Positions 31,751 through 51,667 of a DNA stretch of 64,000 nt are shown piece by piece. A program made the position numbers and the translations under genes. Each line of letters begins with the position of its first letter. The first letter of the stretch is position 1. Origin of the DNA: Monocercomonoides exilis PA203 (taxonomy: Eukaryota > Protista > Preaxostyla); the NCBI GenBank assembly GCA_001643675.2, contig LSRY02000027.1, forward strand, positions 1,116,001-1,180,000, given 5' to 3'. Under the pieces are notes generated by a model. It was not told the origin of the DNA, made no database searches, and saw only the letters and a list, made by a program, of their open reading frames with translations.

Positions 31751-32751
31751 AAAATTATCCGATTATTTGAATTTCTTTTTGAATTAATAAAGATTTTTAT
31801 ATTGTCCAGTTTTTTTCTTTAAACTAAAAATTTTTCAAATAAAAAGAATAAATTTTGGAACAATAACAGAAACCGTAACGAATTCAATCAAAAGCCGTCA
31901 TTTTTTATTCTAATTCAAAAAATTCACAAAAAAAACTTTGAATAAGTAGATTGGTTCAGGTTAAAAAGTTTGCGTGATAGTTCGTGCGTTTAGTGAAATG
32001 CTCCCACTTTCCTTTTAAAGGTTTGCACAAAATAAATTTTTCCAAGGGAGATTGAATGAGTTAGGACATCGTTATATTCAATCTGAAAATAAAAAAAAAA
32101 AGGTTGAGCTTTGTCTCGCTCAGTGTTTACAGGAGCGACCTCAACCTTATAAATTCTCATTGTCAAATGTATTGAATTCGACTACTGCAAATGCTAATTA
32201 TTTCTTTTATTTTTTCAATTTTCATTCATTGAATGATTTTCATTTCGTTCTTTGCAAATAAACACATTTGTATTTTTTTATAAAAAATAACGATTTAATA
32301 AAAAAGAAAATATTTTTTTTACAATAAAAACATGAAGAATTTTTGTTCAATGGATTGTGTTTCCTTTTTGACAAGAAAATTGAGAACAAAACTTTGAACT
32401 GGTTTCAACTTGATAAAGTTGAGACTCATCAATTTCTCTTGAATTGCGAATAAGAATAATTATTGTACGAAAATGATCGGGTTACAAAAAACTCTTCAAA
32501 ATAAAATTAAGTTTCGATGTGTTGTGCAATGAAAGTGCAGTGAATCGGATTTTGCAACCAATTGTGTTGAAATATTCCTCTTCAGACATTTTCATTGAGA
32601 AATTATAAACTTTTGACACTCTTTTTGACAGCGAAAATTCTCAACAAAATTCGTTCGTTTTTTTTGAAATACGTGGTAAGACACAAAACACCACATAATG
32701 ATATTATTTTCATCTGCTCGTTGTTGTGAAAATCCAATATATTTTTTTTAA

Positions 32752-33024
32752 TATGGGGAAAAATATTTGACTTCAAGCATATTCATTGAAAAATTATGCA
32801 CTTTTTATTTTCTTATTTTGATCAAAAAATCCAAGCAAAATTTCTTTCCTTATTGAAATATTTGTGATGAACAAAACATTTTGTCATTTCATCAATGATG
32901 TTTGTTTACAGTGATGAAAATCAAATTTATTTTGTCATCTGAAAACGTTTAATTATGTTATCAGTGAAACAATTTTTTTATGCTTTGTGCATAAAAAGCT
33001 TGAAAGTCCGTATATTCCCCCATA
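32752..33024. mobile_element. MITE family M2 (about 274 bp)
   Basis: TATGGGGAAAAATA...TATATTCCCCCATA; six full-length copies in the window. Confidence 0.8.
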
Positions 33025-33029
33025 TGAGA

Positions 33030-34260
33030 AAGCCAAAAAAAGTTATGAGTTAAACATAGTTTAAATAATAAATGCTTAAAAGCTTGAAAGAATGTGCTTT
33101 CACCCAATTGTTTTGTGAGAGGTCTTGATAGGAATCAAAACATTTCTCTATCAACTTTTTGCAGAAAAAAAAATGCTCTTGAATCTCGAAGAGTGCCGGG
33201 TAAGAACGGACTCCAAACAAAGCTCAAAGGATAGAAGAAGCAAAATTTGTAGTAGAAATAAATGTGAAAATCAGAAAAGAAAGCTCACTAACATTAATAG
33301 AAGTTATTGAAATGATTTGTCAGTTTTTTGAGTGTTCATTTTTTAAATATTGTGAGTGAAAGGCTGTCGACTTCAATCAGAAACATCTGGATTGTGATCC
33401 GAAGTTCATAACATTAGCATAAACGTGGAGGAAATTATAACTGAAAAGACATTCAGAATATCATCAAACATCACCAACTCCTCTTCCACATGCCAGAGCC
33501 GCTCATTCAACCAAGGATTGTTTGGAACCTTTTTTTGCAAATGTCAAAAAGTTCATCGAAGTGGAAAAATATCCATCTTTTTTAGTGTTAAATTTGGATG
33601 AAACATCCACATTCTCTTCGGATCAACCTCCAACATTGGTGATATCAGACGAATCTTCCAGCTCTTCTCCAACTGTGCCAGAACCTGCAATCCCGACTTC
33701 GACTACTCTTCTTTTGATGACTTCTGCAAATGGGGACAGATGCAGGGTGATAATTGTTATTCCATTTCACTCTCTTCTCACAGAGTATATTGCAGCATCC
33801 AATCAGTCGTTGTTATTTGTTCCTTCAGATACAGGACATATGACGTCAGCTTTGTTTCAAAAAATCTTTTTTTCATCTATTGTTCCAGACATCGTCGCAA
33901 AGAGTGCAGCTGTTGGAAAAAGTGGAATGCATTCATTGCTTATCATGGACAGCGGAGTTGTTCACTTTGATGAAAACGCATTGAAGTGTGTGAAAGATAA
34001 TTTGCTTGAAGTTGTTTGCATTTCATCAAGCACATCACATCTTATTCAGCCAAACAACATGCTCCTAATGAAAATTTGAAGAACTCTTTCAAAAAATGAT
34101 GACAAACTTCTTCTGAATTGATAGCATCATCAAAACGGAAGACTTTTATGCAAAATGTGAAAAAACTCTTTGTCTTCAGCTTTGAGCCCAAAAACTATTG
34201 AGATTTCAAAAAGAGTTTTTGGATAAAATCCCTACGAATCATCGAAAATGTTAATAATAA
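33030..34260 (+). pseudogene. pogo-like element P7
   Basis: ARAAHSTK, LNLDET, LIMDSG, SSTSHLIQPNN. Confidence 0.8.
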
Positions 34261-34869: not shown

Positions 34870-36170
34870 ACCTATACGAAAAAAGTTGTTTTTGAACAAA
34901 AAAGCAATTTGAGAACAACTTTTTCATCAACAGTTGAGTTCGAAACAATTTTGTCAAAACATTGTTGGGTACAGATTCTGTTTGAACTTTTCATTGATGA
35001 TATGGATTCGATTTTTTTCTCTGATGGAACTTGAACACATTAGAAAATACATTCAATTATGAGAATACGAATTTCCAAACTGAGTTGATTTTATTTAAGC
35101 TGTTATTCTTCATTCTTAAAAACGAAATCTATTCAAAATACGGGTGATAATTTTTTAAAATCAAAACTTTTTTCTGGGAATTGATATTTCAAAGGTTGTT
35201 TATCTTTGACTGAAAATATTTTTTTTCAAATGAAAAATGTTTTGCATTTCTTTTAAGAGCCAATGTTTGAGATTTGTTCATAGCAAAATTTTCAACAAAT
35301 GGAAGATGATATTCTGGTATTCATTTGATTATACACAATGCAAATTTTTTTCCGAAAACTTTTATAGAAATAAATTTGATATCAAAAATAACCACTGATG
35401 TTCAACAAGCCCGTTAACACTCAGTTGAATATAGAGAAAACAGTCTTGTTAATGAAATGAAAGGAGACAAATCCTTGAAGCAAAATGACAACGGGAAAGA
35501 ACCTTTGATGACAATTGATGTGAAATACTTTGTTCAAAGCATACCAGATTTTTTCACGTCAAAAGCTGAGGAGTGCTCTCTTTTTCTTTTCGCACTTCGC
35601 ACTGGAGCCAGAGACATCACATGCGGAAATGTGAGGCTCTGTGACATAAGACTCGTTGTAATTGAAGATGATTCCATTTTTTTTAAAGATTCGACTAATG
35701 AGAAATAAAGGAAAAGATAAGTGGAATCACGTTGTTCTTCCCGAAAACCAAACAGAAAAAAACAAATTACTTGATGCTGTGTATTGGATTAGACAGCACA
35801 TTCTTCAAAAGTTTGGAAAAGACTTATTTCATAAAGAAGAATGGCCTTTAAAAAAAAAATCAGAGGAATTTTTCTGGAGCTGGAGCTCAGATACAATGAG
35901 AACCAAATTAAAGAAGAGTCCGGAGCTTGCTGGTAATCCTTCAGAAAATATCTGCCTTCATTCTTTTAAAAGTGGTTTCATTTGCTCTTCTTTGACGAAT
36001 GCTGGTTCGAATAAAGAGAAAAGGAATTCAATTCTTGAGACATGTGCATTAATTGCTGTATGGATGACATTCTCGATGAATCAAATGGCATATGTGCAGA
36101 AATGAACATCTCAGAATTTCATTGCTTTTTGTGCATCAATAACGAGCGTTAATAAGAAAAAGAAATCATT
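34870..36170 (+). pseudogene. Tyrosine recombinase YR1 (subtype I), Crypton-like; MITE M1 inserted at 35139-35400
   Basis: LFALRTGAR (R), RNKG (K), LHSFKSG (HxxR position), IAVW, QMAY (Y); frameshift in a T run. Confidence 0.85.
35139..35400. mobile_element. MITE M1 copy
   Basis: TACGGGTGATAATTTTTTAAAATCA...TCAAAAATAACCAC; interrupts YR1 relative to YR7. Confidence 0.65.
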
Positions 36171-36320
36171 GAAAGATCAAAAAAGTATTCAATGGAAAAT
36201 TTTCTCGATTGAACATTTGGATAAATAAATCGTTTGATTGTATTCTTTTTGTGAAATTTTAACTTTGAATGCTGTGAAAGCTGATAATCGAGAGAGAATA
36301 AGCATTTTATTCACTGTGTA

Positions 36321-36581
36321 TATGTTTGATTATTTTTGAAATCATAACTTTTTTCAGTGTGTTGTTTTTTCAAAGACAGTTTATAGTTTGGAAGAAATAT
36401 AGTAGTCAAATGCCATAATCACCCCAATTGTTTTAATAACAAATGATTTTCCCGAATAAAAGATAAAATTGTTTTCAATTATCCTTCTTTCTTTTCAACG
36501 TTCATTGGTTAATATTCAAGAGAAATTTTTGAACAGAAAATTTTTTATGAAAAAATATGATTTCAAAAATAATAACCCATA
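36321..36581. mobile_element. MITE M1 copy (261 bp, inverted relative to 13134)
   Basis: Same length, TIRs and internal sequence as 13134-13394. Confidence 0.8.
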
Positions 36582-37100
36582 TCCACTTTATCTGCTGAAG
36601 AATTTCAAAAACTTGGAGGAATGAATACTATTGTTGAAATAGATGAAGCGATTATTAGAAAAAGAAAATATCACCAACCAAGAAAAAAAGCTCAAATTAG
36701 GTTTTTTGGAATGATCAAAAAATCAGCGGTTGGAGAAAAAGGTGAATGGATACCAAAAAAATTGAGAGATCAAAAGAAAAGCACTTTTATTCTAATTATT
36801 CAAATGAATGTTATTGAGAGAATTAAAATATATTTCGATAAATGGAAATACTATTCAAACTTAGAAGAATAAGGATATCCTCATTAAACAGTTTGCCACA
36901 AATACAACTTCAAAGACACTACAACAAGAGTCCACACAAACTTTATTAAAGGAAGTTGGAACATGTTGGTATAAAGCTTTTTTCACATTTGAAAACACGA
37001 TTTATTCATTAATGATTATTTTCTGAGCTTCTTTATAGAAAGAGAAAAAGAATTATCAATTTTTTAAGCAATATTCAGAATACATTCAACAATCCATTTT
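36582..37100 (+). pseudogene. Merlin / ISXO2 (IS1595-like) transposase remnant
   Basis: LGGMNTIVEIDEAIIRKRKY, FFGMI, FDKWKYY..L..GYPH.TVCHKYNFKD..T.VHTN. Confidence 0.85.
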
Positions 37101-37383
37101 TTCTTCGAATTCGAAATGTTCAATAAAACTACTTTTTTTAAAGTTGTTCAATTTGAATTTTGAATGACTTGTATTGTGTGTGTGCATCGAATTTTCGAAC
37201 TCAATCATTATCAGAAAACAAAGTCAATTCATTCGGTTCGACCTTGACATTTTGCATTTAATCCAAATTACACGTTCAAGCAATTCCACTTGTAACAGAA
37301 TAAAAGTTAACTTTTTTCTCATTTTTCTTTTTCTATCAATTTTTCTCTTTCAATTCAAGATCAACAATTTTTTCAAATCCTGA

Positions 37384-38950
37384 TTATCCAATTCCATGTT
37401 TTTTTGATCCATTGCACATGTATCTATTTTTTTTTTTTTTCGCTTCCTGCACTCTCTCTTCTTTTAAATACTTTTTGATCCTATCAACCACAAAACCTTT
37501 GAAAACTTCACACTGAACTTTTTCTTTCTGCTCCTTCTTTTCAAATGCAATCCCATGAAATGCCTCCACTCCCAACAACGCGTCATCCATAATTGCTAAA
37601 TTTTCTCCGTCTTCATCCTCATTAATCAATCGTGATGAAACAATCGCACGTCGTGCCACCTTCTTTATATATTCCAGCTGCGCAAGTTTAAAGGGAACCC
37701 AGCCTGCAATCAATGCTGTTCGTTCCAGAACAGCGTGCTGCGTATCAGGGCCTGCTCCAGCTTTCACAAGAGCGGAGCAGATTAAGCCGTCTCTGAGAGA
37801 ATGGAAGCTGAAGAACTTCCTTGGATTCCCTGCAGCCTCTGAGCGGAATTTGAATCTTTCCCTCATTGAATCGGTAGACAACTGCCAAATAAGTTAATTT
37901 GTATCAAATTCTTTCTTTTTGTTTTTCCATTCGCTTTATTTCACTCCTGTTTTTGATTCTATCTATATAGATAGCCAATAGACAGGATTGTTATCCTGTG
38001 CGTTTTCCTCATTTCCTTCAATTGTAACTACATGATTCCAGCATTCGTTTCCTTTTGTTCGATTAAAAAGAATAATAACGAGCAGCTTCTTGGATGTCGA
38101 GGAATGAATTACTCATGCAATGTCTCCATAGTGGACATTAACAAGTGTGATTACGAGCGCGCCTGTGTGAACGGATGTCAGATAAAGAGAAGCTTCCAAA
38201 GCTTTTGATGAATAATTCTCAGGAATCATAGACACAATCCTTTTAACATCTGCTATTAACGCTAGCTCTTTTCCTTCACCTCTATTTTTCATATTTCTAT
38301 TAAACTGCAGGAATCAAAGGGCTTCTCTCATTGCAATGATTGTCTTCTTGATAAGTTTCTTCCCTCTTTTTTGTCGGCCGAGCCTTTAAAAAGAAGGAAC
38401 AATCACGAGAGAAATTGATGTTAATGGATAATGATATCTCTTTCCCTGAAAGAGAACAAACCCTTTTGCAAAACTATGGTGTAATGGCTTCGGCTCTTTC
38501 TCAACTTTGTTGGCCCAAGTTTGCAAAAGTCATCTTACCCATGCATGCTTTCTTTTGGTCACTTCAGACCATATTGTTTCACTATTCAAATATTTTATTG
38601 CTTCTTCTTTTCCTATCTTTTCTATTTCTTTATCAAACATCGTGAAGTGTCTGTATATTAAAGGAGAAAAAACGCTAACAAAAGAAGAGCTGGCAGAAGT
38701 AGTGAAGTTGAAAAATGAAGAAAGAGTTCTATCAAATTCTTCGTTGATCATGGAAAATTTCCATTTTTCAAATACTCGAATATTCTCAATACCGCATAAC
38801 TCATTATTTGCTTCATCTTCGTCAAAGTATTTTCATCCAAATCTTCTTTGTCTGTGGAATTAATCTCTACTTCAAAACTTTTATGTGAATCCTCGCGAAA
38901 TTTAACTTCATCAAAACGAATTGAAAATTCACTTTTGCATTTGCTTTTCA
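37384..38950 (-). pseudogene. Tyrosine recombinase YR2 (subtype II)
   Basis: ELALIADVKRIV, SLYLTSVHTGAR, FHSLRDG, IAGW, QLEY. Confidence 0.85.
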
Positions 38951-39089
38951 TTTGCTTTCTTCTTTTTCAAAGTTTATTTTATGAAATGTTTTCATTTTTA
39001 ATTTTTTCTTTTCTAATTTAATCTTTTAATAAATATAAAATATTATTATTATCATAATAATTATTATTATAATTGGAATTTCCCAACAA

Positions 39090-39600
39090 AACTGATTCCT
39101 TACGCTTTCAATTACGATTGTGCATTCAACGTTTTAAGGATCTCAAAAATGACACTTGCAGCTCACAGTTAAACATGTATTTCCCATTTCCTCGAAAGAG
39201 GTGAAGGCGTTCCATTCATCCCTCTGAATTGTGTTTCTAGGAAATAAATTGGATTTGATGATAGAAATAAATATGTTCTTTTTCCTATTTGGTTCACTTA
39301 GGATAAGGAATAGCCCTTGTTTTCCTTAAGCATTTCTCTGAACTGCTCCAAATAACCAAATATGTTTGATAATTCGAACTTTATTGATATTTTCTTTTGT
39401 GAAATATCACCTAGTCAATTTCCAAGATAGAATTTGGACCACCAAGAGGTTCAAATGAATTTCCTGGAATTTTCTGCATGGAAGCTTCAGCCAAAAAATA
39501 ATAAAAACTTGCATTCTTTTTTTGAATTCAGAAAAGAATAAAAGTTTTTGTTATTGATAATTAAATGAATTTGTTTTCAAAGATTTGGATGATTTTGTGG
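39090..39600 (-). pseudogene. Second Merlin / ISXO2 transposase remnant
   Basis: Manual translation: EPLGGPNSILE, IWLFGAVQR, TIQRDEWNAF..EEMG..CLTV..HF.DP..VIES. Confidence 0.7.
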
Positions 39601-39666
39601 TAATCAATGTTCTGATTCACAATAAATAAATTGAAAAGAAGACTTTAAGTGTTATTTCGTTGGTAA

Positions 39667-40126
39667 CATGGGGAAAAATACGGACTTAAAAGCTTTTTAT
39701 GCAAAAAGCATGAAAAAACTGTCTCACATTCAACATTTTTGAACTTAGCCAGATTTCAAAATAAATATGATTTTCATATCTGTGAACAAACATCATTGAT
39801 AAAAAAACAATATGTTTTGCAACCTCAAACGTATTTCGAAAAACAAACCCATTTGTTTCAAATTTTTTGATATAAGAAAGTCAATGAAAAGTGCATAATT
39901 TTTAACTGAAAATGCTTGAAGCCAAATATTTTGCCCCATATTTCAAAATAAATATGATTTTCACAACTAAAAACAAACATCATTGAAATAATAATAATAT
40001 GTTTTGCTTTCTCAGTCGTATTTCCAAAAACATACCCGTTTATTTCAAAAATTTTGATAACAAAAAATTCATCTGAAGTGCAAAATTTTTCAATGACAAT
40101 GCCTGAAGTCAAATATTTTGTCCCAC
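39667..40126. mobile_element. MITE M2 (39667-39940) plus a tandem partial copy
   Basis: Closely similar to 44719-44992; internal segment repeated at 39941-40126. Confidence 0.75.
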
Positions 40127-40699
40127 ATTGTGAATATTTTTAATTTGATTTCTTTTTTCTTTTTTCTATCTTTCTTTCTTTCTTTCTTTCTTTTTTCTTC
40201 GATATTGAATGTTTTCTTTATATCTGATTGTTTTCATACAAGTTTTTAACCAATTTCATGTGTCATCAGCACAATGGAACGTATTGTTAAGTTAACATAT
40301 TTTCATTCATCATTTTTTATTTTCATTGAAATTTTTGGTGATAAATTAAACTTATCAAATCAAAAACAAAGGAGATCACACACAAAATGAAAAATCTATT
40401 AACGATTGCGATTAATTATTTAAAAGTTTTATGTACAAATCAATTAAAAAAATATAGATGTTCAAAATGAAAATTCTTTCGTTAGTTGTTTTTGCATAAG
40501 GATGATTTCTTTTTTGCTAACAAAACTTGGGATATTTTTTTCTCCTATAAATAATCAACACTTTTTTCATTTTCTGAAAGAACTTCTCATTTATAAAATC
40601 TCCAAATTACAGCTTTCTCATTTATTGAAACTGTTTCAAATAAACTGTCTTTAAGAAGTAACTGTATCACATTTATTTCTATTATCGAACACAAAATTT

Positions 40700-41790
40700 T
40701 TTAATGAAATTTGTGAATCCAAAAGAGTTCATTGAAGCATTCCGTTCATTTGGTTCGTTTTTGAATTCGAACACGCTTAGCTCCTTTATCCAATCCCCAC
40801 ACACGCTCCCACACTATCTCCTCCAAGTTCCATTTATCAAATTGAACAAAAGAAAATACGAATTCTTGAACAATATACACTTCAGATCACCGCACAAAAT
40901 ACAAACTTAGCTTTTGACATATATCTCCTTCCAAAGGAACACAATGATTGTTCATTCTTTCATTTTTGCTGCATTACAAAAAATATGGAACTTTCGCAAA
41001 AGAAGAATCAGATTTTGCAAAAGCACACATAATATCTTTCAATTTGATATTTGCACATGTGATACTTCTGGAACCTGTTGAAAGTGAGGAAATAAAGAGT
41101 GAAGCTTCTTTTGGCTTTTTCACAATCAAATTTGGAATAGAAGTGATAATCCGATCTAAATCACCAATTATAAGTTCTTCTTTTATTTTTTTGTCGCAAA
41201 ATAATTGGCACCTCCTTTTGTTTTCAAATTGAGTTTGAACATTTTCATTACTGAAGTTTTGAATTCTCTATTTTCTTGCCCAACTTCAAAACAAACAGAA
41301 GAACGAACATGATGTTTTGAATGAGTTTCTGAGAGATAATATAAACTGGGAATGATTGAAGATTTAATTGACTAAATAGAATATCTTAACCCAATTCACA
41401 TCAACTTCAAAAATACATAAACTGGCTTATCCTTCAACTGTCATGCTTTGTATTTCATTGCTTGACAGAATAATGTGAACATTTTCATTTCCCATTCATG
41501 TGATCTTGTAGTGTCGTCACATGAGTGAACACCTCGTTTGAAATATTTCCAAATTGTTTTCTTTCCATATGTCCTCAGAGCAATTGACAAAGAAGATGGT
41601 GAATCGTAAATATGCCTTGGTGTTTTCAAAACAGGAGTTTTGCTCCTTAGTGAAACAAAATAAAGTGGTTTGAGTTCATTTTCATCAACACCATAAAGAT
41701 CTTTTTTTTTCAAATTGCACAATCGAAATGAATCATCAGTCGTGATTTTTTCGACATCTGTGTATGGTTTCTGTTTTGATTGCAATATTT
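40700..41790 (-). pseudogene. Tyrosine recombinase YR3 (subtype III)
   Basis: PRH..SPS..LRTYG N-terminus; KPKEASLF..LSTGSRSITC, NHCV.LEG, DKWNL, WGL.K; truncated near the HxxR motif. Confidence 0.75.
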
Positions 41791-42191
41791 TTCATATCAA
41801 AAATTTTGTGTATTCCTCAGAATAATGAACAATCACTCGTTGAAAAGTGAAATTAGTAATTTTGAATGTTTATCGCATTTTAGAACTTCCAAGATTATCC
41901 ATTTTCAAAATGAAAATTTTGATAAACATTTCATTCATGCAATTTTTCTGTTCATCAAATGTTTTTAATATTTTCTTTTAGAATATTGATAATTCAAATG
42001 AAATTCGAACACAAAAAAAGAGTTATTAAAATTTCGTATCATTTGAACATAATTAATTCACAACAATAAAAGAAAAATAATCTTTTATTTTTCTTTTTTT
42101 CCGTTTCAAATCATTCTTATGCAAATAATTTTTCAAAAAAGTTCATTTTGTTTAATTTTCATATATTAATAAAAAACAAAATTTTTCATCA

Positions 42192-42465
42192 TATGGGGGG
42201 AAATATGGATTTTCAAGCATTTTTTGCACAAGGCATTGAAAAAATGTTTCGCTCATAACTTTATTTCGCTCTCTCAGATTTCCTAATAAATTTGATTTTC
42301 ACATCCTTAAACAGGTATCATTGAAATCTTAACATGAAGTTTCCCAACATTTCACGAATGTTAAAAAATGGACCCATTTTTATTGTGTTTTTTGATATGA
42401 AAAAGTCAATGAAAAGTGCATAATTTTTCAATGAAAATGCTTGATGAAAAATATTTTGACCCATA
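42192..42465. mobile_element. MITE M2 copy, flanked by M3-like arms
   Basis: TATGGGGGGAAATA...TATTTTGACCCATA. Confidence 0.8.
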
Positions 42466-43039
42466 TGTCAAAATATATTTAAAAAGTTCCTTTTGCTAAA
42501 TTTTCAGGTTAAAATGAAAAATGAATATTTTCATCAAATTTTCATTCCAACTCACAAAAATTCACCGTCATGCAGATTAATGCTTGATAATGTTTTTATT
42601 CACATGCTGGTGAAGTTTCGTGAATTTGAATAAAAATTTGAAAAAATAACTTTTATTTCATATTTCTTGAGAATCAAACAAAAGAAACTTTTCAAACAAA
42701 GACATTTATTTTCTCACACATTTTTATCAATTCATTTTTTTCACTTGTTTTTCACTCCTTTTCTTTAAAAAACAAATCAAAATAATGATAAAAAGTGTAA
42801 AAATAATAGTGATTCAAATAATAACTTTTACTGGATAACAAGTTGGAAAATTTGTTAATGAAGAAGAATCCAATTTAACTGAAAGATTTCCTAAAGAATA
42901 ATTGAATTTTGTATTTCAGAGAAAAAATACTACTAAACTGACATTTGTACAGTTCAATCATGAAAAATAATGGGGATATCATCGTTGCTGGAAAAAGTTA
43001 TTTTGTCCAAATTGAAAAACATAAAAATAAAAATACTAA

Positions 43040-43246
43040 CCCTCGTTAATGATACAAATCAACCAACTTCAAAGAATGCAGCATAAAAATTTGTAAAATG
43101 AAAGAAATCAAAAAGTGTTGCTTTTCACAACACAAATAGTTTTATACGACATTTAGAAAGAACAACTAGGTGCTTGGGTTAAATGAACACTTTGCAAAAG
43201 ATATAGATTCAATACAATTTCCAATTGAATTTGAATGTGGTTGTAG

Positions 43247-43278
<32 letters not shown>

Positions 43279-44350
43279 AAAGACTGTCATTGTTGTGCAG
43301 GTTTTGTTCAATCTGTTGTCGTTTCATCAATTTTAATAACTCAAACAAAAACAAATGATTGACAAATTAATCAAAAACAAAACAAAAATATTTATACTAT
43401 TGTGAGCTTGCTTTTGATTAATAAAAGCCTTAAACAAAAAGGTTAAAGAAAAGAACAATTAGTCACATTTGATATTCAATATTTGATTAACAGCATACCA
43501 GATAATTCCGAATTTAAAGTGTGCGATGCGTCGTTGTTTCTTTTTGCTTTGCGAACTGGTTTACGAGATGTTTCTTGCAGTGGTATCAGATTGTGTAATA
43601 TTCGTAATGTTATAATTGAAGAAGATGGAACAATATTTTAAAAAAATCAGACAAATAAAAATTAAAAGAAAAGAAAATTTGAACCATGTTGAAACATTGG
43701 AATATCAGAATGAAGAAGATGTTGATTTGAAAGTCATCTGTTGGATGAGATAACATTTTTCAAACAAATTCAAAATGGATTTGTTTGATAAAGATAAATG
43801 GCTGGTTGAGGATGAAAGGAAGGATTTTATTTGGACAAGCAAAACTGATGTGATAAGGACGAGATTGAAGAAAAGATTGGATCAATCTGGATTTCCTTCG
43901 GAATCATTTGGATTTCATTCATTGAGAAGTGTATTATTGTGTTCGACTTAAATGAATGCATGTTCAAACAAAGGACTGAAGAAATTGATATTGGAAACTT
44001 GTGCAACTGTTGCAGGATAGATTCCATTTTTTTTTTCGTAAATTGCATATATCAAGAAAGCTACATCTCAAACTGCAATGGTTCCTCGTATTATTATTAT
44101 CAACAAAAACACACCGAAAAAAACGTTTATTGATGACAGATTGCTAAAAATAGAATCTTTCTATAAATTCAAATTGGAATCACAGTCATGCAATGGAGAA
44201 ATTATCTTCTCAAAATTCAATCGTGATATTGTGAATTTATTGAAATAATTAAGAAAAGGACAGAAAAATGATCAGATAACAAATACATATGTATTTCGAA
44301 AGAAATTGTGAAAGTTTGCTGAGGAAAATGAGGAGTTGAAAGAAAAGGCC
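43040..44350 (+). pseudogene. Tyrosine recombinase YR4 (subtype I), absent from the ORF track
   Basis: Manual translation: KSLKQ, SIPD, SLFLFALRTGLRDVSC, NHV, FGFHSLRS; colinear with YR1. Confidence 0.8.
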
Positions 44351-44718
44351 AAATAAAAATACTTTCCAAAGCTTTGAAAGGCTTTCCTGTTTTTCATAAT
44401 TCAATCAAAGATCATATCAGAGATGATATATCCAAAAAAAAAAATTTTTTTTAAATAAAATAAAAAATACCAAAAAAAGTGAGAAAGAGAGGGATGGATA
44501 GTTAGAAATAAAGTTATATTTGAGTTCCTTTCAAATTTATATTTTCTTTTCAATAAATTCGCAATAATAAGTATATCTTTTATTAAATCCATCGTAAAAA
44601 GAAATGCAATGTTTTTTTTCAAAGAATATGATTGTTTTTGAAATCATAACTTATTTCGGTGTACTTATCATAATGAAAATTCATTATCATTTGCTTTTAA
44701 ATTATCATCCATATATTA

Positions 44719-44992
44719 TATGGGGGAAAATTCGTTCTTTCAAGCTTTTTATGTACAAAGCATGAAATAACTGTTTCACTTATAACATTTTTAAACTTTA
44801 TCAGATTTCAAAATAAATATGATTTTCATATCTGTGAACAAACATCATTGATAAAAAAACAATATGTTTTGTGACCTCACATGTTTTTCAAAAAATAAAC
44901 CCATCTGTTTCAAATTTTTTGATCACAAAATGTTCATCTGAGATGCATAATTTTTCAATGAAAATGCCTGAAGAGAAATATTTTGTCCCATA
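44719..44992. mobile_element. MITE M2 copy
   Basis: TATGGGGGAAAA...TATTTTGTCCCATA. Confidence 0.8.
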
Positions 44993-45414
44993 TGTTTATC
45001 AATCTTTTCAAAAGCCAAAGTTTGAAATGAAAAAATAGAAAAAGAAGAAAAAAACAATACATTAACTTCACGATAATCATTTGCAAGGATATAAAACCAT
45101 TTTCAGACCAAATTTTTTGACAGCAATAATATGACATTGTAAATAATCACCAAAATGAATAATCATTGTGTTTTCAATCTGTGTCCAATTTTTTTTCTGA
45201 GAAAAGTTCATATTTAGTAATTATATTTCCGAAAATTTATTGAATTAGAGTTCAAAGCCTTTTCTCTCGATTCTTTTTTTCGATATTTTTTTGTGACTGT
45301 TTATTATCAAGTTGCAATATAAAACCGAGTACGTAATTTTATGAAAAAAAGAGATTTCATTTCGATATTAATTTTTAAATTTGAAAATTTTTGTTGTTTC
45401 CAAATCAATGAATA

Positions 45415-45470
<56 letters not shown>

Positions 45471-45699
45471 CTATTCCTGATTTCTTTGTTTTCAGTTCAT
45501 CTATTGCATTAGCTTATTGATGAATTGAAAAGTATTTTTCATTAATAAAAAATCAAACTTTAAATGACTTTTTTCATTTCAAAAATCAACACTCAAAAAA
45601 ATTGTTTTATATTGATTCAATGATATCCTGATTTTTTTATTCAACAATTTGTGTCTTTTTTTTTTTTTTTTTGTTTTCATTTTGGTTCGTTTGAATGTG

Positions 45700-46620
45700 G
45701 TTTATCAGGTAACAACAAACATCGTTGCTGTCTTCTCAAGCACTGCCTTCTTTGAATCTTCATTTTTTCCACTCTTTATGAGGGCGGAGTATATGAATCC
45801 ACTTCGAATAGAGTGGAAGCAAAAAAGATTCATGGGATATCCTGCATATTGGTCCTTCATTTTGAATTTTTCTCTTATTACGTCTGTCGAGATTGGCCAA
45901 ACAGGCCTTTCTTCATCAACTTCCTCTCTCTTCATCATCCACTCACTCAATCTGGCACCAACGCTTTTATTCAAATGCATTGAAAGCCAATAAACAGCAT
46001 CATCATCACGGCAACTCTCCTCCTCTCCTTCCATTGAAACATGATGGTTCCAACGAGAGGAACCTTTTTTCCTATTGTAGGAAAGTATTACAAGAAGTCT
46101 GTTTGTTTCTTTCTATTGAACAACTCCTTTAATGTGACACATTTTAAGGCCAGATAACGTTATTGCTCTTGCGCAAGTTTGGACGCCTACAGGATATAGC
46201 GAGACATCCAAATATTTAGAGTCCAGCTCATCACGGAGATAATGGACAATACGAGCAAAGTCCGAAATCAGCGCAGGTTCCCTTTCTTTTACTTTTTTAT
46301 TGACTTCTTTACCTTTCCTTAGACTTCTGATTGCTTCATTAATTGTTGAATTAGTTATGCTATTTATTTTCTTTCCCATTTTTTCTATATTTATTCTTTT
46401 GATTGATGTGGTAATGACGTATGCAATGCTTGTCAATGAGAAGTAACATTCTTTTCTGTGGAAAAGAATGAAGCCCTTCGCAACAAGAGGATGAACAGTC
46501 CGTATTTTACGCTCCACAAGCTAACTTAATGATTGAAGAAACCTCTGGACGCATGCGTTTTTTCATATCCAAGCTTCTGACTTCAAAAGATTGGACTTCA
46601 CGCCCTGAAGAACCTTATGA
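45700..46620 (-). pseudogene. Tyrosine recombinase YR5 (subtype II)
   Basis: EPALISDFARIV, SLY..VQTCAR, STDVIREKFK, FHSIRSG, AVLEKTA. Confidence 0.85.
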
Positions 46621-46846
46621 TTTCCAACTTTAAAAAGTCAAGTTTATTAATTTATTTATTTTTCGAAAAAAAAAATTCACATTTGCAGTTCAAAATTCAT
46701 GAAATAATATTTTTATATACAAATATCTTTTCACCCGAAGAAATTTTATTGAAATGGAGGAAAAAGTCTTGATAAGAATTTATTTCCATTTCAGTTTTTT
46801 CTCATAAATGCATTCGCTTTTTTGAAAAAAAAGAAAAATTTAATTA

Positions 46847-47119
46847 TATGGAGGAAAATACAGAATTTCAAGCATTTCTTGCACAATGCATTGAAAAATA
46901 ACTTCGCTAATAACTTTATTTCACTTTTTCAGATTTCAGAAAAAATTTGATTTTCACATCCTTAAACAGGTATTATTGAAATCGAACCATAAAGTTTTCC
47001 AACATTTCACGAATGTCAATAAATGGACCCATTTTAATTATAATTTTTGATCTCAAACAGTCATGAAAAAGTACATAATTTTTCAATGAAAATTTTTGAA
47101 ACAAAATGTTTTTCCCAAA
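46847..47119. mobile_element. MITE M2 copy at the truncation point of YR6
   Basis: Closely similar to 42192-42465. Confidence 0.75.
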
Positions 47120-47575
47120 ATGAATAAACTAACGCAATCCCAATAAATTTCACAAATCCATACATGGATTTTGCGTCAAGCGGAAAAGGTTCATAATGAT
47201 ATGCTTGACAAAACAAAATGTACATGACAAATGACCACCGATGAGATTTGAATGTTTCTCGAGAAGTTGGAATTCCACGTTGAATGTATGGATTGAAAAC
47301 ATTTTCTCCAAACGTTCTCAATCCACGACTGAAACGGCTTGGTGTTTCAGAAAAATGTCGAGGAGAAGAAAGAAGATGAGTTGAAACTGTTAATGATGTT
47401 AAATCAATAGATTTTAACATTTTCTCATTCACATTTCAATAAATGTCTTTTTAATTGTGAACAATTTTTAAAGAATCATTATCAGCAACTTTGTCGTTAA
47501 AGATTGTGTGTTCATTATTTTTTTCTTAAAGATGATTTTTCAATGATAAAAGTTTCATTTTCTGTTTTGGAGACA
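47120..47575 (-). pseudogene. N-terminal part of tyrosine recombinase YR6 (subtype III)
   Basis: SPRHFSETPSRFSRGLRTFG..RG..SHRW..MYILFCQA aligns with the YR3 N-terminus. Confidence 0.7.
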
Positions 47576-47848
47576 TTTTGAATTTTATTAAAAAAACATT
47601 CTATTTTTTTTTTTCTTTTTCTTTTTTTTTTTTTTTTTAGTAGTTTTAAGTTTTTAACACTTCATCGTTGTTTTGAAAATCTGCAATAGAAGCAAAACTT
47701 TTTTTTTTCAAAATAAAAATCCAATAAGAGCTTATTTTTATATCTTCCATTTCAACAAATTTGTTTCTGTTATAATTTAATTTTCATTTCAGATATACAT
47801 TGATTTCTGAATTCGCTTAGATTATCGTTATATTTATATGAATGTGTA

Positions 47849-48107
47849 TTTGTGTTTATTTTTTTAAATCAATTTTTTTCGTTGAAAAATTTGACTTGAA
47901 AATATATTTTGCATTTTTGTCAGTGAACATTGAAAAGTGATTACACCGTCTACAAAAAAAAAGTCATTTATGAAGCTCAAATGTGTGCTTTTTTGAACAA
48001 TTGCAATTTTTTTTATACTCGAATGATAATTTTCAAGAAATTGACAAACGAAAATCAAAAAATCGAAACTCCGAAAAAAGTTATGATTTCAAAAATAATC
48101 ACACAAA
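47849..48107. mobile_element. MITE M1 copy
   Basis: Ends CCGAAAAAAGTTATGATTTCAAAAATAATCAC as in 13358-13389. Confidence 0.7.
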
Positions 48108-48129
48108 TATTCATATCAAAAACACAATT

Positions 48130-49500
48130 TCTGCAATAGGGAACGAATGGAGAAAATACAAGGACCGGTCTGCAGCACTTGAAGAACAAAATGTGTCATT
48201 GGATAGAAAAAGAACAAAGCCAACATTTTTGGAAAATGCGTTGAACGTGGTCAGCAAAAACAGAATAAAAAAATATTTTGATGAGCCACGTCACTATTCC
48301 AATTCAACATAAAAAAAACACACTTGAATTTTTCGTTTGAACAATTCATTTGCACAGTGTTTTGATTTTCATCCATTTCCAATGAATAAAAAATGTGTGA
48401 CAGGATTTTTGCATTTTATGGTTAATGATTGCAAATACTGCGTTTTTTCAATAGAATATGCTATTTTACGATCTTTGAAACGAATTCAACAAAGAATGTT
48501 CAACAAACCATTGGATAAGGATTCGACAGTGTAATCAATTGAATTGTCAGAGAGCTGAAAATGAACAAATCATTGAAGCAAAGATGTGAAGGAAAACAAC
48601 CTCTTGCAACTTTCGATATGAGTTATTTAATCCACAGTATCCCAAATTATTTCACTGACAAAGCTTCAGAAGATTCTTTGTTTTCATTTGCTTAACATAC
48701 AGGAGAAAGGGCAATAACTTGCTGTAGTGAAGGATTATGCGATATTATAAAATTCAGGGAGAAAAATGGAAGTTTATTTGTTTATGAAAGATTATTGAAA
48801 TGCAAAAGGAACTTCGTATTAGAATCCTCCTTTCACATTGGAGAAATAATCTGAAGAAAATATATCTCTTAATGTTGTGTATAAGTTGGTGAAATTAATT
48901 CAGAAAAAATTTTCTTTGGATTTGCATAATGAGGAGTTCTGACCTGTAAATGAATATGGAGATAAGTTTCTTTTGCCATATAAAATTGCTATGATGCGAA
49001 CGAGATTTTATAAAGACTGGAGTTTTCAAACTATCCTTTGCAAGAGTTTGGATTTCATATATTTGGGAAGCGATCTGTCAAAATTGTTTCGAAAAGTTCC
49101 TTTTAAATAATTTTCAAATAATGAAAAATATTTGACAATTAGATAAAATTTCTGTTTTCACTCATGTAACTTCACTAAAATGGAAATATAAATATTTTCT
49201 CGATTTTGTTTTCATTACAGCGAAGTTTCATGAGTGGAAACAGAAATTTTATCAAAATATGAAATTCATATTTTTATAGAAAATTAATCAAAAAGAACTT
49301 TTCTAAAAAATTAAGTCATCTCTATTCTCAGTTAAATAGGACACAGTAGAAAATATTATTGAAAGAGTTGTCTCGTTGGAAACAAGTGCTTTAATAGCTG
49401 AGCGAATTCCTTATTCAAAGACTGAAATGATTAATGACAATAAAGTTGCATCATAAAATTTCATCGGAAACAAGAAAGAATATTCATCATTTATTGAAAA
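48130..49500 (+). pseudogene. Tyrosine recombinase YR7 (subtype I); MITE M3 inserted about 49074-49320
   Basis: NKSLKQ..GKQPLAT.D..Y..SIP, TGERAITC, FGFH, LETSALIA. Confidence 0.75.
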
Positions 49501-50125
49501 GAAGACAATTCAAAACAAATAATTAATGCTGTATCAAACATATTTCACGTTTATTGAATGACAAACTCATTTTGTTCAAATTCGATCATTCGATATTAAA
49601 TTTCTTTTATTTCATAAAAAATGTTATATAAAATTGAACAACAATTTGTAATTTTAATTAATTCTGTCTTTTTCCAATCAATAAGAAATAGAAATTGTCT
49701 GTAATAAAAAAGATTCTTAACAAAAAGCCAAGTCCAAAAACCCTTAACATATTTTTTTTATTGAATGTTCCTTTTGAAAAATTATCATATAAAATGAATA
49801 ATTCATATTTTAATCAAAAATGTTGTTCGCATTCATGGATCAGCATTTGAATAAATGAAATTGTTTTGTTATTCATTTATTCGTATTGATGTTATGTTTT
49901 ATGTGTGGGAACAAAAATTTTATCAAGGTTTGAAATTATTTTTTTATTTGAAAAATATAACAACAAGTTTATTATGAAAATTCATTTATGCCAAATAACA
50001 ATTAATTCAATAATGAAAAATCCATTAATAAATAAATGAACAAATTATTTTTAAAATTAATAAATCAATAAATTTATGAATGCATAAATAAATAATTTAA
50101 TAAATAAATAATTAAATAATTAAAT

Positions 50126-50179
<54 letters not shown>

Positions 50180-50189
50180 GGGTTGATCA

Positions 50190-51350
50190 AAAGGATCCAC
50201 ACAAAATTATTCACACCTTCCAACACTTCATCTGGATTGTTTATTCGATTTGCAATAATTGTACTTTTTCTTGTTTTATCAACATAATTCACCTCCACTT
50301 GCGATCCTGATTTCCATTTCGTAACAAATGCTGCTGTTTCAAGAAAGTTTTCTTTGAGTTCAGGTTTATTTCCAATTTTCAAAAATGCTGAACTGATAAA
50401 ACCTGATCTCAAAGAGTGAAAACCAAATAATTGTGAGGGGTACCAAGTTTGGAATGATCTTTTTTGAAGCCTTGCTCTCATCGCACACTTCCTCAATCCC
50501 CACAAAAATTGCACCCCCATCCTTCCTAAATTCCATTTGTCGTATTTTGTTAGTGATAATCCATATTCTTTAACAAGAAACTCCTCCAGCCACCAGACAA
50601 CATTCAAAGTGTGTTTTTCTGTGATATTTCCTTCAACTGTTACACAATGGTCGTCATTTCTTACCCCTTTTCCACATGCTAAATTAATTGTTACCTTCAC
50701 AAATGTTGATGAATAATTTACATACACCTTCACAATATCCATTAGTCTTATTTTTGAACATGTGTGGCTTCGCACCCCTGTGGACAAAGCAAAAAGAAAC
50801 AAAGAAGCCTCTCTTGGTTTTTCAACAAACCAATCAGGAATGCTCGAAAGTATCACATTCAAATCAGGAACAATTAGTGGTTCCTTATGTTTTGACACAC
50901 ATTTTGCTTTTCAAATATGCCCCTTCTCAAACATTTCATTTCGTTGAAATTGCACTTCAGACTCCTCCAAAAGAACAAGTTTTCTGACAACTTAATATAC
51001 AAATGTGTTTGTTCTATTCCAAGACAAGAAGCATTGCAAAGGGATTATAGAATCTCTAATGCTTTTCAATGAATAATTCAAAGCAGTCAATATTAACTTT
51101 TCAAAACCATACGTTGCTTCTCCTTCTACAGGCAAACGTTCTTTTTTGTATCTATTTCAAGATAATGGGAACCATGGATTTGAAAAGAGAATAATCACTT
51201 TTTTTATTCATAATTGATTTACAATTATTTCGAAAATTGACAACTATTTTTTGGTTTTCATATTGTGATTTCAGAAAAAAAACAAACCAATTTTCAATGG
51301 GATTAAATGTGTTTAACTCTTGGAAGTACTTGATTTTCAGTCTGAACAAT
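50190..51350 (-). pseudogene. Tyrosine recombinase YR8 (subtype III); catalytic domain open, N-terminus broken
   Basis: LFALSTGVR, CGKG, FHSLRSG, VTKW, VNY: full R-K-HxxR-W-Y set in ORF 50074..50898. Confidence 0.88.
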
Positions 51351-51393
51351 TATGTTAAATCATAGTATTCATTGTTGCAATAAAAACAATTTA

Positions 51394-51667
51394 TTTGGGG
51401 TAAAATATTTGACTTTAGGCACTTTCATTGAAAAATTGTTCACTTTTCATTGACTTTTTTATATCAAAAAACACAATAAAAATGGGTTCATTTTTTGACA
51501 TTCGTGAAATGTTGGATAACTTTATGTTTCTTTTTCTACGATGCCTGTTCACATATATTATAATCCAATTTATTTTGCAATCTGATTGAGTTTAGTAAAG
51601 TTATGAGTGAAACAATTATTCAATGCCATGTACAAAAAAAGCTTGAAAGTCTATATTTTCCCCCATT
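51394..51667. mobile_element. MITE M2 copy (inverted)
   Basis: Reverse-complement match to 42192-42465. Confidence 0.75.

Follow-up and report, generated by a model that had tools for sequence, protein, structure and literature searches.

Do the tyrosine recombinase (YR) sequences crowded into one internal region of the Monocercomonoides exilis genome form a mobile unit of three recombinases, or does their regular arrangement have another source? We examined this question on a 64 kb stretch of contig C22 (G000:C22:1116001-1180000; total length of C22, 1,312,184 bp), hereafter called the window, where the recombinase cluster occupies 35.4-51.2 kb and lies ~145 kb from the right end of the contig. 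A preliminary description had reported eight YR genes of three subtypes (I, II and III), each with a fixed strand, and had proposed either a eukaryotic three-recombinase mobile unit integrating in tandem or three families that target each other's ends. Our searches of the whole genome (82.3 Mb in 101 contigs) lead to a different answer: the array is quite probably a decayed internal stack of fragments from single-gene elements encoding a recombinase with a Myb domain (YR-Myb elements), laid on one telomere-repeat context and later trimmed and invaded by miniature inverted-repeat transposable elements (MITEs). Recombinase elements are not mentioned in the paper on the Oxford Nanopore assembly of M. 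exilis (PMC8767320), and in the literature we found no publication linking Monocercomonoides with tyrosine recombinase elements or describing a YR-Myb family at chromosome ends.

The copies were delimited with a core profile of 525 columns, built from 8 intact genome copies of the YR family. Exactly eight core matches were obtained in the 64 kb window, with none elsewhere in it even at a relaxed threshold, and all eight fragments matched the family profile with E values from 1e-11 to 1e-112. The genome as a whole has ~130 matches in 82 Mb, a density that eight copies in 16 kb exceed by far. Each is given here with its extent, its strand and its profile match on the same strand; clades are those of the tree described below.

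YR1: 35398-36170, plus strand; clade I core fragment covering profile columns ~185-425, with sharp limits on both sides; profile match 35442-36102, columns 204-425.
YR2: 37399-38745, minus strand; clade II pseudogene in 5 pieces, columns 77-510; profile match 37399-38706, columns 77-510.
YR3: 40749-41764, minus strand; clade III pseudogene, columns 41-365; profile match 40752-41755, columns 41-365.
YR4: 43149-44439, plus strand; clade I pseudogene with sharp limits on both sides; profile match 43450-44233, columns 222-483.
YR5: 45723-46629, minus strand; clade II fragment, columns 108-408, within a block common to contig C40, with sharp limits against its nearest relatives at 45727-46629; profile match 45723-46517, columns 144-408.
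YR6: 47118-47432, minus strand; clade III, N-terminal (core-binding) domain only, columns 68-171; profile match 47118-47429, columns 68-171.
YR7: 48115-49513 (~48115-49064 plus 49361-49513), plus strand; clade I pseudogene interrupted by a 230-bp palindromic MITE at 49082-49312; profile match 48043-48692, columns 32-254, with a further piece beyond the MITE, 49376-49513, found by tblastn extension.
YR8: 50191-51153, minus strand; clade III fragment adjoining an A50 run (50130-50180), with sharp limits against its nearest relatives at 50191-51147; profile match 50197-51153, columns 143-451.

The reported number of eight was therefore right, but none of these copies is a gene: what is left of the 3-4 kb elements is internal fragments or pseudogenes, reduced in the array to core pieces of 0.3-1.3 kb. 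The N-terminal region and the C-terminal Myb domain are absent from all eight, and tblastn with 28 long open reading frames (ORFs) found no C-terminal part in the window, identifying the fragments as truncated family members. Only short frames are present in the region under the standard code, and alternative genetic codes restore no long ones, hence the fragments are genuinely broken. A single open frame, of 278 codons, is kept among the eight, in YR8, which retains all of R, K, H..R, W and Y; in YR1 the second catalytic arginine is replaced (HSFK) and in YR2 the first is gone. The motifs quoted in the preliminary description are all present in the translations. Its view that the array is not an assembly artefact also agrees with our data: short-read contigs (four DNA runs, one sample) cover the unique parts and the junction between YR6 and a MITE called R (crossed by contig 47006-47300) with zero mismatches, which makes an artefact unlikely.

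As Pfam gave nothing useful on the window fragments, the identity of the family was taken from intact relatives, which are single ORFs of ~900-1300 codons (for example L002:3075-6863, 92% identical to YR8 at the DNA level). With an AlphaFold2 (AF2) model of the intact C12 core (predicted local distance difference test score, pLDDT, 68), the 29 best matches in the PDB were all Cre, over both domains (E ~1e-5, template modelling (TM) score by target 0.54-0.58, ~365 aligned columns). Searches by sequence only gave weak matches, to Cre (PDB, E 0.04) and to Pfam PF00589 (E 2e-4). R265, K299, H383, R386, W417 and Y427 are invariant in 14 intact cores. By its two-domain fold and its catalytic R-K-H-x-x-R-[H/W]-Y residues, the family belongs to the Cre-like tyrosine recombinase superfamily. 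Pfam further recognised a Myb domain close to the C-terminus of clade I and clade IV proteins, with a weak match in clade III. In five intact ORFs (847-1263 aa) it detected only Myb and a weak integrase match, with no reverse transcriptase (RT) and no RNase H, and no RT-like or RNase H piece was seen among the scanned ORF pieces of the window array, in agreement with the earlier remark that RT is missing. The elements are, by gene content, Crypton-like DNA elements and not DIRS-type retroelements. A protein-database search returned oxymonad proteins and one metagenomic protein only, the homologues being annotated 'uncharacterized protein MONOS_* [Monocercomonoides exilis]'. Another oxymonad, Blattamonas nauphoetae, has a relative annotated 'Tyr recombinase domain-containing' (P0009), and the unnamed metagenomic protein (P0008) is 31% identical.

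We then placed the eight copies among their relatives. A tree of 51 rows (IQ-TREE) resolved four clades, I to IV, each with 100/100 support. YR1, YR4 and YR7 fall in clade I, YR2 and YR5 in clade II, and YR3, YR6 and YR8 in clade III, while clade IV has no member in the window. The three subtypes of the preliminary description are thus clades I-III, and both their order and their fixed strands were recovered by the profile search and the tree. Every window copy is sister to a copy outside the window and never to another window copy: YR1 to C92/C34/C76 (79% aa, 82% DNA identity); YR2 to C9/C60 (83% aa to C60:458390); YR4, with 100/100 support, to the telomere-adjacent copies at both ends of C25 (78% aa, 79% DNA); YR5 to C1:2689115 (77% aa, 80% DNA); YR6 to C6mid/C40 (82% aa to C40); YR7 to C48 (82% aa; 85% DNA to C48:25139); and YR8 to C12 (88% aa; 92% DNA to C12:1585214-1586171). 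YR3 is closest to C59:43089, with 61-66% identity. These closest relatives, mostly intact chromosome-end copies, are 77-92% identical to the window copies (61-66% for YR3), whereas copies of one clade inside the window are 40-57% identical to one another. Between window copies, or between the presumed units, no DNA-level similarity was found except that of MITEs. A recent segmental duplication, already doubted in the preliminary description, does not account for the array. An approximately unbiased (AU) test rejected YR1, YR4 and YR7 as an exclusive clade (delta lnL 203, p 3.5e-5).

The fixed strands are explained by the behaviour of each clade at chromosome ends, genome-wide. Polarity was counted for copies ≤60 kb from coordinate 1 of a contig or from a known contig end, and these counts, like those of adjacency in the ~25 stacks outside the window, were tallied by hand from the search tables. 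Clades I and IV point inward, away from the telomere, in 13-14 of 14-15 cases, with one outward; clades II and III point outward, towards the telomere, in 41 of 44, with three inward (Fisher exact p 2e-9 on the 13/1 versus 3/41 table). Of the four exceptions, three cluster in C25:9.9-22 kb (clade III on the plus strand, clade I on the minus strand, clade II on the plus strand), which suggests that C25:9900-22000 is one inverted subtelomeric segment. Intact members are found almost only at chromosome ends, piled up distal to a short telomere tract. At the ends examined by sequence this short internal tract is always centromere-proximal to the element, whichever way the gene runs: on the 5′ side, it precedes the ORF by ~560-1100 bp in clades II and III (C24R, C26R, C1b, C19L), and on the 3′ side it follows the ORF by 0.4-1.3 kb in clades IV and I (C6L, C21L, right end of C25). 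In clades I and IV the element is frequently the outermost gene, next to the telomere (C6, C21 and both C25 ends).

Copies cut at breaks healed by telomere repeats were observed at C21L, C26R and C48. At C48:25083-25162 (L030:700-780) a clade I copy, cut in its N-terminal domain, begins right after telomere-like AACCCTAACCTAA; this is a clear case in which telomere addition healed a break that today lies 25 kb into the contig. The older parts of the subtelomeric stacks C8R, C9L and C1b hold short core fragments without telomere tracts, similar to those of the window. In the window itself, clade I on the plus strand with clades II and III on the minus strand is the polarity of a left chromosome end, and all eight fragments obey the clade rule (chance 1 in 128). 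The fixed strands thus follow from a clade-specific polarity relative to the telomere and are not the property of a unit. The clades stack because all of them sit, at chromosome ends, against telomere-repeat tracts that persist at element junctions. The earlier idea of families targeting each other's ends was close in spirit only.

The order of the clades, I, II, III, I, II, III, I, III, is as periodic as 8 of 560 possible orders (0.014), a value calculated post hoc. No second I-II-III trio was present in the ~25 other stacks, where clade I has no constant neighbour: II comes after it at C92 and III at C34, III precedes it at C48 and C76, and at C25 it lies beside another I. In ~10 cases clade II had the distal position relative to clade III and in 4-5 the proximal one, a difference that is not significant. 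The I-II-III periodicity, for which we found no rule, is most likely chance, on top of a weak general tendency of II to lie distal to III.

One part of the array also exists elsewhere. Window 45.7-48.1 kb, which comprises YR5, a spacer, R, YR6, a second spacer and a dispersed repeat of 250 bp, has a paralogue on the opposite strand at C40:580010-582626 (86-91% DNA identity). Its YR5 part is 86% identical to C40:581604-582035, and 47131-48108, with the YR6 part, matches C40:580010-580958 at 86%. The match between C22 and C40 runs past the point where homology to intact elements ends. The shared block lacks YR4 as well as YR7 and so does not respect the limits of the proposed trio, and its presence on both contigs implies that at least part of the array was moved or duplicated en bloc from one internal array to the other. 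A clade III N-terminal-domain fragment directly upstream of, and co-oriented with, a clade II copy was seen at C60:455937-458878 and at C40:580654-582626 (the C40, C60 and C92 contexts were read from search coordinates only). The pairs YR6-YR5 and YR3-YR2 in the window show the same arrangement as those at C60 and C40, and the C40 pair is a true paralogous block.

These results bear directly on the other origins that could be proposed for the array. A composite unit of three recombinases, integrating in tandem in the manner of the bacterial RIT elements, would account for an order with fixed strands that only 8 of 560 orders equal in periodicity, and two neighbouring pairs recur, I then II (convergent) at C92 and III/I (divergent) at C48 and C76. 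It is nevertheless hardly credible. The same-clade copies of the three supposed units are only 44-57% identical and each is sister to a different outside copy; intact copies of I, II and III are separate ORFs, each with its own Myb domain and its own telomere tract; copies outside the window number ~9 for clade I, ~30 for clade II and ~40 for clade III, with no further complete trio in ~25 stacks; the C40 block carries YR5 and YR6 without YR4 and YR7; and RIT genes are co-oriented while the window fragments (plus, minus, minus) are not. The unit of the preliminary description is thus contradicted by independent single-ORF relatives, unequal copy numbers and the lack of a second trio in the ~25 stacks: elsewhere the subtypes occur singly and in random order, the very outcome which that description had set against its own proposal. 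An old local tandem triplication of a three-fragment segment, since diverged, would likewise give the periodic order, together with the similar spacings of the R copies (2525, 2527 and 2128 bp from start to start). We consider it very improbable, as the clade I copies are rejected as an exclusive group by the AU test, each copy is far closer to an outside relative (77-92%; YR3 61-66%) than to its counterparts in the array (40-57%), the fragments span different parts of the gene in each 'unit', and the units share no DNA homology but MITEs, their R copies being no closer than unrelated ones. Such a triplication would survive only if massive gene conversion from chromosome-end copies had overwritten every fragment.

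A third possible origin is a mosaic, put together mainly from subtelomeres and internal arrays by ectopic recombination, gene conversion or block duplication, with fragments that never inserted here as elements. Every fragment has sharp internal limits, the C22/C40 block is 86-91% identical, and identity along the fragments is patchy (64-99% per 100 bp): YR8 reaches 94-99% in its centre against 79-85% at its edges, and YR7 drops from 98% to 76%. However, a mosaic alone does not explain the coherent polarity of eight fragments (1 in 128) unless oriented blocks moved whole, and one shared block is all that was observed, so that as a full account we regard it as unlikely; it overlaps with the stacking of elements proposed here rather than excluding it. 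We give a small chance, finally, to an assembly rule behind polarity, near-periodic order and C40 block together, by which each telomere-seeking element would leave short telomere tracts at its junctions and these would serve as recombination sites, as in integron cassettes: the recombinases could then excise and re-integrate single elements or blocks of several, at internal positions too, and the clades would land preferentially beside each other's ends.

For the decayed stack, the mechanism that we infer would run as follows. The recombinase would join an attachment site of the element to the asymmetric TTAGGG repeat, perhaps guided to it by the Myb domain, and the orientation of each clade would be set by its own attachment site. 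The array would have been built at a former chromosome end or on an internal telomere-like tract, and because the window has one coherent polarity, a single telomere-repeat context is presumed. Independent members of the three clades would have stacked there in that polarity. Later the copies would have been trimmed to core fragments and mutated, the telomere tracts lost and the region invaded by MITEs, and at least one block would have been exchanged with the internal array on C40, by block duplication or gene conversion.

Several observations speak against this account. The order of the clades is left to chance by it, at a nominal p of 0.014. The 64 kb window contains no (TTAGGG)2, no telomere repeat and no degenerate tract, and consequently only polarity and the habit of the family link the array to telomeres. 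(Of single hexamers, CCCTAA occurs 0 times and TTAGGG once, with ~5 expected for each; other CTA-containing permutations are equally scarce, so that nothing follows from these counts.) In its polarity the array faces away from the contig end nearer to it, and a mirror-image array is lacking alongside, which is not what an end-to-end fusion of the simple kind would leave. Trimming down to the conserved core, with abrupt limits at either side, affects every one of the eight copies, YR8 with its 92% identity included. This both-sided trimming is not predicted by plain decay of full insertions, and may point to patchy gene conversion or fragment capture. Lastly, the polarity counts rest on far contig ends that are known for part of the contigs only.

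The recombinase fragments are interspersed with debris from other elements. R is a MITE of 274 bp that ends in terminal inverted repeats (ATGGGGGAAAATA...TATTTTGCCCCAT) and has >1100 candidate copies genome-wide. Seven copies or part-copies are present in the window, none of them away from the recombinase array: those within it are all on the plus strand, and the two at its borders on the minus strand. In the window they are mutually 70-84% identical, no closer than unrelated genome copies. The features of this kind are:

32570-33066, minus strand: R MITE, a full copy (32751-33023) with partial pieces, at the left array border.
33441-34076, plus strand: pogo-like DDE transposase fragment (Pfam DDE_1, E 0.005, below the family cut-off).
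36576-36869, plus strand: IS1595/Merlin-like transposase fragment between YR1 and YR2 (Pfam DDE_Tnp_IS1595, E 0.0025, below the cut-off).
39668-40128, plus strand: R MITE, 1.7 tandem copies.
42193-42466, plus strand: R MITE, followed by a palindromic MITE-like repeat at 42478-42696.
44720-44993, plus strand: R MITE.
46848-47122, plus strand: R MITE, adjoining the truncated end of YR6.
47852-48114, no strand assigned: dispersed repeat of ~250 bp with many genome copies, inside the C22/C40 block.
51393-51666, minus strand: R MITE, at the right array border.

The dispersed repeat is probably another MITE family. It carries a very abundant 50-bp end motif (48058-48109), also found at 36319-36370 and 44629-44662, for which the short-read contig depth is ~39,000. 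R was also observed within other decayed arrays (C15:1029-1035 kb and C26:1186 kb). That R might be the terminus of the recombinase elements was ruled out, as it is a MITE with its own terminal inverted repeats, dispersed genome-wide. We similarly rejected the idea that YR5 and YR6 are one gene split by an insertion of R: profile positions 144-171 overlap between them with different sequence, and the identical two-piece arrangement is found on C40. Pure runs of A or T of ~30-50 nt lie beside fragment ends (43245-43275, 45418-45470 and 50130-50180), and the short-read contigs are interrupted at runs near 45.65 kb, 47.6 kb and 50.1 kb. We also excluded poly(A)-tailed retrocopies, the A50 run beside YR8 being on the wrong strand for a tail of YR8.

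Had the three-recombinase transposon been borne out, it would have added a new class to the mobile elements of eukaryotes; the evidence speaks against it. What emerges in M. exilis is a telomere-associated recombinase-Myb family of at least four deep clades, whose fixed and opposite polarities are the signature expected of site- and orientation-specific recombination into an asymmetric telomere repeat. Fossil stacks of this family occur within chromosomes, and blocks of them are exchanged. Arrays of this kind could be the marks of former chromosome ends or of telomere-like tracts in the interior, and would then help to trace how the karyotype of this protist, estimated at 40-50 chromosomes, has changed over time.

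Among known systems, the nearest are the YR-Myb elements at the chromosome ends of M. exilis itself, which belong to the same protein family, have the same Cre-like core layout and are stacked and truncated alike. The window array differs from them in being internal, in having no Myb part, telomere tract or intact copy, in mixing three clades in one polarity and in being full of MITEs. Bacterial RIT elements carry three co-oriented recombinase genes, strictly 1:1:1, that move as one unit. The window resembles them in that three distinct recombinase subfamilies adjoin, but here orientations are mixed, copy numbers are unequal, each gene is an element of its own and the trio does not recur. The telomere-specific retrotransposons HeT-A/TART of Drosophila and SART/TRAS of Bombyx move via RNA with a reverse transcriptase; like them, the YR-Myb family forms oriented stacks at chromosome ends in which older copies are truncated, while unlike them it has no RT. 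DIRS, Ngaro and VIPER elements differ in the same way, RT and RNase H being absent from the intact relatives and from the scanned ORF pieces of the window.

Cryptons are eukaryotic DNA elements with a tyrosine recombinase as sole enzyme, which often carries a DNA-binding domain at its C-terminus (Kojima and Jurka 2011, PMC3212892). The M. exilis elements are like them in gene content, the recombinase being the sole enzyme, with neither RT nor long terminal repeats. Cryptons are dispersed, and to our knowledge they are neither telomere-specific nor stacked in oriented arrays. A precedent for residence in telomere-type repeats comes from the endogenous nimaviruses of crustaceans, whose tyrosine recombinases are telomere-repeat-specific and whose viral genomes of 200-360 kb lie in (TAACC)n (PMC10871703). 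The M. exilis elements, of 3-5 kb, single-gene and in (TTAGGG)n, are far from these viruses in build; the likeness is one of habit, that of a eukaryote-associated tyrosine recombinase element residing in telomere-type repeats.

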